The notes under the pieces: generated by a model
The model's input: the letters and a program-made list of their open reading frames with translations, nothing else
Database searches by the model: none
What the model was told of the DNA's origin: nothing
Source: Pelomyxa schiedti
Lineage: Eukaryota; Protista; Evosea
NCBI GenBank assembly: GCA_020536535.1
Contig: JAHLWZ010000824.1
Coordinates: forward strand, 38,228 to 102,227
Direction of reading: 5' to 3'
Length of the DNA: 64,000 nucleotides
In this document: positions 14,742-30,105 of the stretch, piece by piece
How the letters are laid out: every line of letters begins with the position of its first letter
How positions within the stretch are numbered: the stretch's first letter is position 1
Made by a program: the position numbers and the translations under genes

Positions 14742-14899
14742 GCTGTGGTTCTTCTGCTGGCTGGTGGGTTGCCTATTAATCGCGGTTAGAACTACATCAT
14801 AATGAGAATGCATATCTTGGATTCTCACGTGGGTCTGGTCTTTCTCTGCTGTGGTTCTTCTGCTGGCTGGTGGGTTGCCTATTAATCGTGGTTAGAACT
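14742..14899. repeat. 52-bp direct repeat (14742-14793 and 14848-14899), 1 mismatch
   Basis: gctgtggttcttctgctggctggtgggttgcctattaatcg[c/t]ggttagaact occurs twice, 106 bp apart. Confidence 0.9.
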
Positions 14900-15236
14900 G
14901 CGTACTCAAAAGTTGGAAAACGAGCTGGGTGTGTGGTACAGAAAAACAACAATAAAAAGAGGTGTGCCTGTGTGCTGAAACAACAATAAAAACCTAACAC
15001 CTGTTACGGGTGTGTAGGGTGTGTATTTGTAGATCTCGGTTATTGGGCATAACTTGGTACGTGTTCCTAGTTTTTTTTATGTTTTGACTGCTGTGTGGGT
15101 TTTTTGTAATTGGGAAGATCCCAGAGATCCCAGATCCCAGAGAAAATGGTGACGGTACATAATGGTGACGGTACTCTGTGGCGTTGCTCGACTATGCAAT
15201 GGGCTGACCAACATACCCTAGGAGGGTGTATGAGGT

Positions 15237-16739
15237 TCAAATCTGGCCTCGAATTTCTTTTTTTGTTTGATTTGTTCTTTTCGGAATGCCGGAATTGAGT
15301 TGTTTATGTGGTCTTGACAGTTTTAAGTTGGTTCTTGTCTCAACTACTTCAGGAAAAAATTCTACACAATTCCGTGGGTCTTTGGCGGGTCGATCAAGTG
15401 GCTGCGTGGTGTTTTCTGGTAGTGTTAGTGGCTGGTTGTGTGGTTGCAATTGATGATGGTGAGGGTGATGACTCGTGATTTGGAAGAGGGAACCCATCAA
15501 GAAATCAGAACACAACTTGAAGCCGCCGAGTTCTCCCTTTTTGGGGTCTACAAACCAAGTCTCCCACTCTTCCCTCTCCTGCCTGTCACCTTCATCATCA
15601 TAGTATCCAACGGTTTTGGCTGCATCAATCACGAAAAATCCATTGCAAAAGAAGGAGACCTTCATCGGAGACGTTGATGCTTGGAGGGGCAGAGTGTATG
15701 CTATTACAAGCGTCTGGCTTGAGTATGATTTGACTGTGTCTATTACCATCAAGTCCACTGTGGTCTCATCAAACGCTGAAACATATAAAATAATCTGATT
15801 TTGGTCTGGAGCATTGAAAAATGGACTCCACACTTGGTGGGTATGTGCAGAGTAGGGGAGGCTGATAAGACTGAGGTGTGCATCAGCACTTCTAGGCTGC
15901 AAGAACATCACAAATGGCTCATTGTAATCAGTTGCAACAGACAGAAAGCCCGCAAACCACTCCTTATTTACACACCAACCATAGCATCGGAACCGCATAT
16001 TAGACACAGCTTCTACTGGCCATATCTTCCTCTCTTGTGATACAGCGTGGCTCTGCCACAATTGCCACTCTCTCGCTGTGGTTTTTTCATAGACATAGCT
16101 CAGTTCATCTGCCCAGACGCCATCCTGGTGTTGTATTTGTATTGTTGGTGCAGTGATAGTTCCGTTTGTCTGTGGCGATACTGAAAATGAGACCCATATG
16201 TTTTCGTCTGGGTTGCAGAGTAAGGTTGAATTCGTGGACTGCAGCTGGAACTTTACTACTTGTACGTCAATGAGGTAATCATGCAGTAAACGGATAATGA
16301 TTGGGGCGTGAGGTGCCAGCCACGAGTGGCGTCCAAGAGATGTCAAGGCCTTTAGTTGGTTCTGCAAAGTGAGCAATACTTGGGGGTTATTGGCCAAGTC
16401 CATATACTCCGGTTCTGCTACTCGATATTTCCCGAACTGGGCATATGGGTCCTGGGATATTTGGTATTCCTTGTAAGCCTGTTCTGCACCCAGCCTAAGC
16501 ATGGAGCAATTGTATGCAGCCCATTCTTCAGGGGATTGGGGGTACCGTAGTTGCGGTTCGTCTTGCTGTTGTTGTTGCTGTTGCTGTTGTTGTTGTTGTT
16601 GTGGAGGTGGCGGCGGCGGGGGCGCCGCTTGCTCTGCGTGTGGCTGAGCTTGTGCCTGGGGTTGGGCGTTTGCACCCTCATCACCCCCAACATTGGCATC
16701 TGTCATATTGCGGTCAGGCTGTGGGTCGGTGCCGTCCAC
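15237..16739 (-). CDS. Intronless ~500-codon ORF with polyQ and an unknown beta-rich domain; probably the 3' part of a gene starting at 17425
   Basis: Uninterrupted ORF; the listed start is GTG and the frame stays open upstream to about 17060. Confidence 0.7.
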   Translation of the reverse strand: MDGTDPQPDRNMTDANVGGDEGANAQPQAQAQPHAEQAAPPPPPPPQQQQQQQQQQQQQDEPQLRYPQSPEEWAAYNCSMLRLGAEQAYKEYQISQDPYAQFGKYRVAEPEYMDLANNPQVLLTLQNQLKALTSLGRHSWLAPHAPIIIRLLHDYLIDVQVVKFQLQSTNSTLLCNPDENIWVSFSVSPQTNGTITAPTIQIQHQDGVWADELSYVYEKTTAREWQLWQSHAVSQERKIWPVEAVSNMRFRCYGWCVNKEWFAGFLSVATDYNEPFVMFLQPRSADAHLSLISLPYSAHTHQVWSPFFNAPDQNQIILYVSAFDETTVDLMVIDTVKSYSSQTLVIAYTLPLQASTSPMKVSFFCNGFFVIDAAKTVGYYDDEGDRQEREEWETWFVDPKKGELGGFKLCSDFLMGSLFQITSHHPHHHQLQPHNQPLTLPENTTQPLDRPAKDPRNCVEFFPEVVETRTNLKLSRPHKQLNSGIPKRTNQTKKEIRGQI

Positions 16740-16859
16740 GACATTGTGCGCTGCGGGGCGGGGAGCGGCGGGGATGTTGCTGGCTCTGTCGCGGGGCAGA
16801 CGCGGGGGCGGCGCCGGGCAGGGCCCAGGGCGGCCGGGGGAGGCTCGGGGCGGCGCCGC

Positions 16860-17425
16860 GGGGGGGGGGTGTAGCCACGGCGGCGTGTGTGGGCGGTCGG
16901 GGAGGGGTCTCGGTGGCGTGGGGCTTGGTCCCGCAGGTGCCTGCTCCGTGCAAGGGCTGCAGGGGTGGGGCGGAGGAGCACCCTGACGCCCCGGCCGATG
17001 TTGACGACGCCGATTTGTTCGAGGGCGTAGAAAGCCTCTTCGCTCGTGTTGAATCGCAACTTACAGTAGAATTGACCAGGAAAGGCTGGGGTCGGTCTAG
17101 GCTCGCTCACTGTGGCATGGATTCCCGCACGACCCAAATTCGACTCGATCTCGGCCGCTGAGATCCTGATGTGCCCCCTGATATAAAGCTCATTGCCGAG
17201 GTGCGCCGGTGACTGGAAAGGTATTGGACGTTTCAGTCAAAAAACGGCATAATGAATGAAAAATAAAAACAACCAACAAAAAACAAGTTTATCCACTGGG
17301 CGCACCAGTGCATTTCGTTTGATTTTGATGATAGTTCTCGTTTTTTGTTTGTGTGGCGGGTTTTTGACTGAAACGTCCAATACCCTCGTCGCCCCACAAT
17401 CCAGACCTTCCTTGCGTGAAAACAT
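16860..17425 (-). CDS. RRM-like N-terminal coding region interrupted by a MITE
   Basis: ATG at 17425 gives MFSRKEGLDCGATR; after the MITE the same frame reads NELYIRGH..AAEIESNL..FYCKLRFNTSEEAFYALEQ..VRVLL, an RRM-like secondary-structure pattern. Confidence 0.55.
17224..17380. mobile_element. MITE copy 1 (157 bp), Tc1/mariner-like non-autonomous element
   Basis: 20-bp perfect TIR ttggacgtttcagtcaaaaa/tttttgactgaaacgtccaa, TA on both sides, second copy at 29783. Confidence 0.92.
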
Positions 17426-17619
17426 GGCAATAATGATTTCACCCGGGTCACCAGATCTGTCAATGCAGGCAGAAAAATGGAATGGCGGAAAAACTGGCAG
17501 ATGGAAATGAAGAAAAATTGTAGCTTTTTTTGTTAACTGCGTTCTTTTCTTTAGTTTGGCTTGTTGTATACATGGAGAAGTTTATGATTTTGGGTTGGGC
17601 TAGATAGATAAGAGGTTCT

Positions 17620-20600
17620 TTAGGTGTGTTTGGTTGTGTTTTTCTTGACGAGTGCAATCCTCTTGCACTTGGGGCAGGTTACTGGTGTGAAGTTGTTTTT
17701 TTGTGCACAGGCGTTGTGGAAGAGAGTTCGGCACCGAGGACAACGCGTTGTTATTGACGTCTGAAAGGAGAAAATGGGGTCCCGGCTGTTGCAATACTCA
17801 CACAAGAAGCCTTTCCCTTGGCATGTCTGGGTTTGGGGGTGAGTGAGGTTGATAATTCATTGGTAAAAAAAGGAGGTAGTAAGCAGACCTCACAGTCGGT
17901 TGTTATGTGGGCCAAAATCCGCTGTGATACTTTAAATAATAACGGGAGTAAAGTCCTTTGTGTGGCAGCTATCAGGTCGTTGAGAGAGTACATCGTTTTA
18001 TTCTCGAGGAAGTGAATGTTTCCTTGGACAAATTCCAGTAGAATGTCTCTAGATGACCGTGAAATCATATCGTGTTGCAAAGAAATTCCTACCTGCTCTT
18101 GCAAGTGAAAACAAATTCACCCAACAGAACGAGCTGACTTCGGAGTTCCTGTATGATATTAGGTTTTTTCTGGGAATTGTAAAAATGTAGGGATACAATG
18201 ATTTGATCTATGTCAGCAATTGTTGTGAGAAGTTGTGGGTTGAGTGTGGCCACATCGAATATGGCGCTTTTTGCGTGAGTTGCAATGTGGTTCCTTGCAG
18301 TGGTGCTTACAGGATACCTATAATTATAATGGTGTTAGTGTTATTTGGAGTAAAGAGGCATACTGGGCACCATCCCACATATAAATTATGCGTGCTGGAA
18401 TGACACTCCGCTCGTTTGTGTGACATTTATTGCAAAAATACTTGCCTGTATAGTAACAATACCGAGAAAAGCTGAAAAATCCTAATGAGGCTGGTGGATA
18501 TGAAAATTTTTGAATAAGAAATGAACCAGCAGACACTTTGGTCTGGCAACCAGGGCAGATGATGGTGGGGTCAGTGTTGGAAGCTTTATTATGAACGATT
18601 AGGCTATATGGAAGACCATGAGTTTCAGCTTGTGTTTCCTGAGTTCAAGGGTAAAATAACACTGTCTCAGAATTAAAAACGGGCACATACCTCACTCTTC
18701 ATTTTTGGGTTGATTGGTGTTGGTGTAGGAATGGCCGCCGATGAAGTAGTTGTCACGGATTCGGAGGTATTCATTGGATGTATTTCACCGTAGGGAGTAG
18801 TATTGGATGGTGGGGGTTGATAGTCGCTGAACACCATATACGGGAGTACAGGGGAGACTTTCACGTCACCTCTGTGATTTTTTTTTGTGGGAAAGTAAAT
18901 TATCTGGAAATAGACAAAAGTGGCATTACATAATAGTTGCCGATGCTAGCACAAGTGTTGGAGGGGGTGCTGGTGCGGGTACGTCCTATGGCGAAATAAA
19001 ACAATACTTATGATATGCTCACAAACCTTGAGGGATATCGTGCGTTTCGGTGTGGCAATTTGTGCTTTGGTAGGAGTGGTAGTATTGGAAGTGTTTGCAG
19101 GAGGTTGAGTACGGAACAAAGACTGATCTTGAGTCTTTGAGTTGCCCTAGTGGATATTAAGTGCAAAATTTTAAAATGGAAAGTACCCAAGTTCCTCTTG
19201 TACTGAAAATCACTGTTCCAGAGTTGGCACCTGGAGATAATGGTCCAGGTGACAAACTTCGATTAATATGCGGTTTGGTTTGCTGTGCTACGGCTGTTGT
19301 GGATACAGATTTTTTTAATTGTGTATGCGTTTGAGGTGGTGAAGTAGGATGAAGGGGTGGAGGTGTTTCTGTGGGTTCAGTTGGTTCTGGAGGTGGAGGG
19401 GTTGCAGGAGGAGTCGGTGCTTCATCTTGAATCTGGGGTATGGGTTCCCCTTCCGCAGAAGAGATGGACTTTGTCTCAGTTGAGTCAACTGAGGGTTGGG
19501 TCTGTATTTCGGTGTTTAGTGGAATTGGTGGTCTTTCCCCTTCATTTCCATTAGTTGTGGATGTGGTGTTGGTAGCTGATTGCTCTGCCTGAGCTTCAAT
19601 TTCGGATATTTCAATGAACGGCACTGGAGAACATAGTGTTGGCAGAGGTTCCGATACTTGACCCGGGAGTGCGGGATCTAGAGGTTCTGTCTGGGGTTGC
19701 TGAACTGGTAGAAGAGATTTTGGGGGAGAGATGATAGGTGGGGATGGAGCTTTTTGTGAAGAGTCTTCTGCGTATCCGTAAAGGGGCTCTGAGCTTATCT
19801 CGACAACTCTCGTTTTTCCTGGTTTTCGAACTTTGTGTGAAGCTGCAATAGGCTGTGGCTTAAGAGGTGTAGGGGGAATATATTTCAGTTGCTCTACACT
19901 GATAAAAATGTTGGAGGAGAAATGGTATTTTAACTTTACATTCGTTGGCTAAGAGGCCCAATGCTCAGATTGAACTCTAAAGATTCAAGGCTCAATAGGA
20001 GTTGCAAAAAACTAAATACATTTTCTTCATTACGAAGGAAAGCGTAATCATAATACAGGCCACTGAGAGATATTAGAGTAATTTGACAATAAAATATGTA
20101 ACTGTAAATGGTCTTTATCTTGAATCAACAGTCTTATACACCCCGCAAGAGTGCGAGTATTAAGACCCTGCTTGACAAATAGAAAGGCTCGGTCAACGTC
20201 ATTTAAATCGGCGGCACGAATGTCGTACATCATCCTGTGGAGGGGTGATGGAATTGGCGTGGGGGGAATCAGGCGCTCGACTTTCTTGAGAAAATCCCAT
20301 GGCACAGCTATACCTAGTGAAGATCAGATGACTGCTGAAAGAAAACGCGTTCTTGTATAGATAATAATGAAGCAAGTACTTTTGAGACCATGTGTCAAAA
20401 TTGCGTCTATACTAGACAACAAAAGGGTTGTTGAAGGGTGAGTCTCGTCAATTGGTGTAACTTCAGCCTGCTGTATATGAAAGGATTAAACCTTCTGCGA
20501 TATATTGTGTGCTGTACCGCTGTCGCAATTTCGATTGCAGATGAAAGGTTATCAATCAACTGTGTGTATTGTGAAACAGCTTGTGATGCAACTGTTAAAA

Positions 20601-29779: not shown

Positions 29780-29782
29780 ATA

Positions 29783-29940
29783 TTGGACGTTTCAGTCAAA
29801 AAACGGCATAATGAATGAAAAATAAAAACAACCAACAAAAAACAAGTTTATCCACTGGGCGCACCCAGTGCATTTCGTTTGATTTTGATGATAGTTTTCG
29901 TTTTTTGTTTGTGTGGCTGGTTTTTGACTGAAACGTCCAA
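29783..29940. mobile_element. MITE copy 2 (158 bp)
   Basis: Same TIRs and TA flanks as copy 1; differs by 2 substitutions and a 1-bp indel; lies right after the GH125 stop codon. Confidence 0.92.
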
Positions 29941-30105
29941 TAGGTGAATGAATTTGTGGATTTCGCTCCCAGCGCGGACGCAAAAACGATTTTCGATCGC
30001 AATGAAAATAGCGGGAGTTCTGCTGGTGAGGCGGTTTTTCGGTTGCGTTGTCGCACGACTTTAAGATAACTGCTAAAAGTAAATTAATTTGATTGAGGAA
30101 TTTGA

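Follow-up and report, generated by a model that had tools for sequence, protein, structure and literature searches.

The locus considered here raises the question of what becomes of a coding exon of the anaerobic amoeba Pelomyxa schiedti once a MITE has inserted into it. Is the element now removed from the transcript as a new GT-AG intron, or has it disrupted the gene? The window, by which we mean the whole stretch of 64,000 nucleotides that was analysed, comes from a genome with 7.43 introns per gene, about twice the figure for Mastigamoeba (PMC8887013). The published assembly was built from amplified single cells with Illumina and Nanopore reads, and the published transcriptome consists of five Smart-seq2 libraries (PMC8887013). 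The features at the insertion site, with coordinates read along the minus strand, are as follows.

17381-17382, no strand assigned: gene-upstream copy of the TA target-site duplication; together with the host G at 17383 it forms GTA
17224-17380, no strand assigned: body of the MITE, 157 nt, with 20-nt perfect terminal inverted repeats (TIRs) and arms 71% complementary over 80 nt
17222-17223, no strand assigned: second copy of the TA target-site duplication, from reading of the sequence
17213-17383, minus strand: proposed GT..AG intron, 171 nt, a candidate from sequence

On the minus strand, host sequence ACG AGG G-TA leads into the TIR TTGGACGTTTCAGTCAAAAA, which starts at 17380; the inverse TIR TTTTTGACTGAAACGTCCAA runs to 17224 and is followed by TA-CC TTT CCA G/TCA, the slash marking the proposed acceptor. 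The MITE cuts a GTA valine codon at position 15 of the host gene. It has no coding capacity, and the ORFs that run across it are due to chance only. The earlier note on this DNA had stated that excising the element plus one TA (159 nt) restores ACG AGG GTA CCT TTC CAG TCA, that the frame ends at 17237 with the element present, and that an in-frame GT-AG pair would allow 171 nt to be taken out at a cost of four codons. On re-reading of the minus strand, all of its statements about the sequence proved correct; the frame that opens at ATG 17425 stops at 17237-17239 when the MITE is present (a 62-aa ORF).

Contigs of a DNA run (16904-17249 and 17354-20400) span both insertion junctions at flank depth, and no empty-site joint was seen in that run over 14800-20400. 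Full depth at both junctions together with the missing empty-site joint indicates that the insertion is real and is fixed in the sample from which the run was made. The library type of this run, which covers 97% of the stretch, is unrecorded, and we took it to be DNA. A search for an empty-site allele or a close duplicate found each flank to be single-copy in the own genome, and a pattern for the spliced junction or the empty site gave no match among metagenome contigs. In Rfam, the hairpin (17218-17386) matched only plant MITE-derived microRNA precursor models, and these below threshold (MIR8562, 42.8 bits versus a gathering score of 211); the matches are generic hairpin likeness and not a family match.

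The element belongs to a family of repeats. A search of the own genome (52.4 Mb in 5,337 contigs) gave 74 matches to the MITE, about 40 of them in sense orientation with 78-100% identity, and 30 of those at 92-100%. The closest other copies are 99-100% identical to the MITE at the site and, as judged from sequence identity, the family is young. Its TIR ends occur 84 times in the genome, compared with 0 for a reversed control pattern, and each of the 24 full copies examined is bordered by TA on either side. One further copy lies within the window itself.

29781-29942, no strand assigned: second family copy in the window, 98% identity, TA on each side

Like Stowaway-like or Tc1-mariner-type MITEs, the element is a short non-coding hairpin with perfect TIRs, an invariant TA duplication and dozens of near-identical copies, mostly near gene ends. 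Its assignment to a superfamily is based on the TA duplication only. A search beside solitary TIRs for an autonomous partner sharing these ends gave none; the ORFs found there are olfactomedin-like or Sel1-repeat, and none is a transposase. At these loci (L046-L051; C80:26465, C88:46262, C239:42233 and C58:2223), solitary family ends are followed by unrelated inner sequence, some of them beside N gaps. These loci may represent longer elements related to the ~158-nt family.

What was hit by the insertion can be read from the host gene and its relatives. The host gene comprises the following parts.

17384-17425, minus strand: first 14 codons, MFSRKEGLDCGATR, with the sole in-frame ATG upstream of the insertion
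16871-17212, minus strand: coding sequence of the N-terminal domain, predicted RRM fold, in the frame given by the earlier note, with paralog homology from the first residue on
15237-16739, minus strand: open frame of the C-terminal domain, 500 codons, first ATG at 16706, transcribed

The 169 codons that follow the proposed acceptor have paralogs in the own genome on contigs C3640 (E 1e-17), C180 and C238, and the 500-codon frame at 15237-16739 has paralogs there on C1406, C180, C238 and C992. On both C180 and C992, a single ORF without interruption encodes the two domains (742 aa on C180, 735 aa on C992). These single open frames suggest that the gene family is intronless and that its members begin with an N-domain of ~100 aa, which a Pro/Arg-rich linker connects to a C-domain of ~400 aa. 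All paralogs examined are a single open frame at the position equivalent to the insertion. The family has at least five members (among its coordinates are 15237-17425 in the window, L038:556-2781:- and L041:212-2416:+), and the linker is rich in Pro, Arg and Gln.

When the empty site is rebuilt, it reads ..TR-V-P-F-Q-SP.. and matches the conserved paralog N-terminus ..R-V-K-F-R-SP..; in the alignment, TRVPFQSPAHLGNELYIR lies against SRVKFRSPRDVGNVLYVR and WVVFTSPRDLGRKLYIR of paralogs. Across the insertion, MFSRKEGLDCGATR-VPFQ-SPAHLGNELYIR in the window corresponds to M-SSR-VKFR-SPRDVGNVLYVR on C180 and to MSSGW-VVFT-SPRDLGRKLYIR on C238. The valine whose codon was hit belongs to a V-x-F-x-S/D-P motif that is kept in three of four paralog N-termini, the fourth having A-x-F. 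The RRM region of the window is 36-45% identical to the RRM regions of the paralogs, and all 19 family-invariant residues are present. The position of the paralogs' start codon reads GGG in the window, not ATG.

The open frame itself is weak coding evidence because at 16700-17200 the sequence is rich in GC and all three minus-strand frames are open, with a further 215-aa ORF on the plus strand. Because of the paralogs, the coding status of the target rests on homology and is independent of the open frame. The earlier claim that the insertion struck an open coding frame is thus borne out by the paralog homology across the insertion point.

The N-terminal domain is predicted to have an RRM fold. 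A profile of five family members matched RRM4 of PABP in the PDB at E 1e-6, and an AlphaFold model of the N-domain (pLDDT 77) has the beta-alpha-beta-beta-alpha-beta order. In Foldseek, almost all of the top 50 matches are RRM domains or RRM-containing proteins, with a best E of 1.9e-3 and none reaching 0.001. No Pfam RRM model reached E 0.1 on the window copy, and Pfam was silent on both the 500-aa ORF and the 169-aa piece. The host N-domain thus shares its fold with RRM proteins, whereas the ~400-aa C-domain is without known relatives outside the species. An index of 5.8 billion proteins, queried with the 500-aa ORF (whole and as residues 95-480) and with the 169-aa piece, returned no homologs; for the C-domain, 1.84 billion representatives yielded three matches, each of them from P. 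schiedti itself. A look-up of the exact 489-aa product of the locus in public records, which may omit those of the window's genome, found no entry. On these searches, the gene family appears to be species-restricted and amoeba-lineage-specific. Two of its members, L034 (C238) and L037 (C1406), are near-identical paralog copies that differ by a frameshift at ..GEYR/LVSPEYL.. (the slash marking the position), and the NCBI model of the C238 copy spans the frameshifted region by a predicted splice. Allelic variation, recent duplication or a fault in the assembly could account for the pair.

Our preferred reading, to which we give a probability of roughly 55%, is that the insertion is recent and mainly disruptive, the RRM part being untranslated and the C-domain part still transcribed. 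A young, non-autonomous, TA-targeting Stowaway-like MITE would have cut valine codon 15 of an intronless, lineage-specific gene that belongs to a redundant set of paralogs, and the effect of this recent hit would be largely disruptive. Since the stretch from the element down to 16706 offers no in-frame ATG, translation of the RRM part would have ceased, and any protein still produced would be limited to the C-terminal part, started at the ATG at 16706. The in-frame GT..AG pair would then be a chance by-product of the G-TA-C target, and some splicing may occur.

Among the alternatives, the one that survives best is that the inserted element now functions as part of a 171-nt GT-AG intron, such that the mRNA is in frame without VPFQ and encodes the full protein with RRM and C-domain. 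We consider this possible but rather unlikely. The proposed donor combines the host G with the T of the TA duplicate, and the first host AG past the element (17214-17213) would serve as acceptor. Read from 17383 to 17213, the segment opens with GTATTG and closes with CCTTTCCAG, with a T-rich tract and CTGAAAC before the AG, which is the arrangement of a U2-type spliceosomal intron; the acceptor is also the first AG after this tract with its branch-like CTGAA motif. GT and AG are in frame with each other, which favours an intron. Excision of the 171 nt would drop the four residues VPFQ, with 12 host bases lost, and the removal of the element would be imprecise. In the AlphaFold model, the four codons lost on splicing correspond to a tail of low confidence that is not part of the RRM core, again in favour of an intron. 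However, splicing would delete the V-x-F motif, which three of the four paralogs retain at their N-termini (the fourth has A-x-F), and this speaks against an intron.

A yardstick for what is spliced in this region is provided by the neighbouring gene.

17574-17620, minus strand: end of the upstream Rubicon-homology-domain gene, containing its stop (17620) and the end of its RNA contig cover

Over 2.6 kb, the Rubicon-homology gene (17620-20235, minus strand) has eight RNA-proven GT..AG introns, each 40-62 nt long. That the RNA contigs skip these eight introns means that the contigs represent truly spliced RNA. The RNA of this gene ends at about 17574-17598, and the ~150 nt from there to ATG 17425 make the gene spacing very tight. 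The proven donors of the gene are loose (GTA, GTT or GTC), a point in favour of the intron; the splice signals proposed at the insertion are acceptable for this genome. A second candidate donor, GTAAGT at ~17061, was rejected, as its use would remove RRM sequence that is conserved among the paralogs.

Length and structure weigh against splicing. The proposed intron measures 171 nt, compared with 40-62 nt for the eight proven introns. Exon gaps in HSP70 genes have an approximate median of 47 nt (29 gaps, four of them above 100 nt); relative to this median, the proposed intron is larger by a factor of about 3.6. The transcript is predicted to fold into a hairpin of -68 kcal/mol (z -7) whose basal stem of ~30 bp contains, and would bury, the donor; pairing of the donor in this stem is aided by the palindromic GGTACC target. 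Length as an argument for a knock-out is weakened, however, by introns of 167 and 233 nt in HSP70 paralogs, both inferred by homology and one of them carrying another MITE. The 233-nt intron is that of paralog L052 (G000:C496:146182-146414), situated at the conserved ..KDAVIT/.PAYFNDSQ.. (the slash marking the intron), where L054 and L055 have introns of 59-60 nt. Bases 29-112 of the L052 intron are a repeat of ~84 nt that is present in at least 30 copies at 86-99% identity. By its sequence, the L052 intron is a candidate for a MITE inside a working intron, and the repeat within it suggests that long, MITE-bearing introns probably exist in this genome.

Direct evidence was sought in three RNA runs from one sample and study (52-98 million letters each), whose contigs were mapped to 14800-20400. 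The contigs cover 15336-16555 of the host gene, and depth continues into the 16670-16856 bin, so that the 3' two-thirds of the gene are transcribed. This transcription, together with the intact open frames, is consistent with the intron. Over 16857-17417, however, the three small runs contained neither an RNA contig nor a joint, and the earlier proposal that the 171 nt are spliced out is to that extent unsupported. The missing RNA cover is itself weak evidence of absence because the libraries are tiny and 3'-biased (Smart-seq2), the region is very GC-rich, and contigs drop rare forms. Because the insertion is so young, the intact downstream ORFs are silent on selection and cannot be counted in favour of the intron. 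The frame also changes again downstream of the insertion, a further point against it.

How readily such a layout arises by chance can be estimated from the rest of the family. We surveyed the 24 full copies on both strands, which gives 48 copy-strands. A G precedes the TA in 12 of the 48 (25%, the chance rate), and four of these 12 have their first downstream AG at a length divisible by three. The in-frame GT..AG layout is thus found on 4 of 48 copy-strands, or about 1 in 12 by chance, which counts against a functional reading of the layout at this site. Long open frames are not enriched around the 23 other full copies relative to random TA sites of the same loci, and none of the 23 is demonstrably within coding sequence. 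Copies L002 and L026 lie a few bases past a stop codon, and L003 has an ART-domain ORF on one side and the start of a NAGLU gene on the other. The earlier note had gone on to suggest that insertions of this kind could be a route to intron gain; with G-TA at the chance rate of 25% and copies that are not enriched in open frames, a general route of this sort is not supported for the family. Flanks at the chance rate, no excess in open frames, and copies beyond stops or before starts make the family unlike introners.

The downstream change of frame suggests another possibility, namely that the RRM part was already dead, or an untranslated leader, when the MITE arrived. The loss of one base from a run of Cs would have uncoupled the C-domain, which would start at ATG 16706, and the MITE would then have hit a leader or promoter.

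16860-16869, minus strand: C10 run (G10 on the plus strand), near the frame switch, where DNA contigs break

A codon-likelihood scan trained on the paralogs places a switch of the best coding frame at ~16810-16850, just downstream of this run. One extra C would fuse the RRM frame with the frame of the 500-aa ORF, as in the paralogs. With ten Cs, the RRM frame ends at 16703-16705 and overlaps the C-domain ATG at 16706 as ATGA. A short intron as the cause of the frame change (16810-16870) was judged by reading and rejected, as the stretch is very GC-rich in comparison with the proven introns, which have 25-44% GC. The position of the frame switch favours an earlier uncoupling, as do the end of RNA cover at ~16750-16856 (an estimate from bin depths), the location of other family copies near gene ends, and the GGG found in place of the paralogs' start codon. 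However, the RRM frame is fully open and has kept its identity to the paralogs (36-45%) and the 19 family-invariant residues. Moreover, the DNA contigs end exactly at the C10 run, with 16870-16903 uncovered, and this break suggests that the length of the run is uncertain in the reads. Because the source was amplified single cells, an error in run length is plausible. The C10 run may reflect either an error in homopolymer length or true slippage, and we find it improbable that the RRM part had been lost before the insertion.

Least likely is an assembly artefact, in which a chimera caused by the repeat or by amplification put a MITE copy at this site. Amplified single cells were co-assembled and contigs collapse within the repeat, but each junction is spanned, at flank depth, by an independent contig of the DNA run, the TA duplication is perfect and no empty-site joint was seen.

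The recent, mainly disruptive insertion favoured here can be set beside known cases in which a transposon has become an intron. In the introners of Micromonas, Aureococcus, dinoflagellates and Florenciella, an element with TIRs and a target-site duplication likewise sits in a coding exon, with a splice site formed from the duplication and the host. Introner families consist of many intronic copies, whereas in the present family 1 of 24 examined copies is in coding sequence and splice-compatible flanks occur at the chance rate. Most introner copies are intronic, but the other copies that are readable here are located after stops or before starts. In introners, the element or its duplication regularly gives the splice sites, but here the donor needs a host G and the acceptor is purely host sequence. 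A further likeness is found in maize, where Ds and dSpm alleles of wx, adh1 and bz carry exon insertions that are spliced via cryptic sites, as proven by cDNA. The site would resemble the Ds and dSpm cases in that a single exon insertion would be removed imprecisely, with one splice site at the element end and one in the host, to give a slightly altered protein.

Introns that arose from transposons and draw their splice sites from the duplication or the host are well documented (PMC11282704, PMC9860276), which lends some support to an intron at this site, and the Florenciella introners take both splice sites from the insertion site (PMC9860276, PMC11282704). The mechanism proposed in the earlier note is one already known and matches both introners and single transposon-derived introns (PMC11282704, PMC9860276). 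A literature search returned no paper linking Pelomyxa with introners. It is conceivable, but we think it doubtful, that MITE families of P. schiedti (this ~158-nt TA family and the ~84-89-nt element of the HSP70 intron) are now becoming introns and that the locus is a freshly born intron. If true, such an intron birth would be the first introner-like process reported in Amoebozoa, seen before better signals are fixed.

Should the 171 nt be spliced, the locus would offer a dated, single-event snapshot of the birth of an intron, with the intronless paralogs as the state before. Should they remain in the transcript, it would represent an ordinary recent knock-out or N-terminal truncation of one redundant family member. 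The wider question to which the locus points is whether several MITE families of P. schiedti feed its high intron density.
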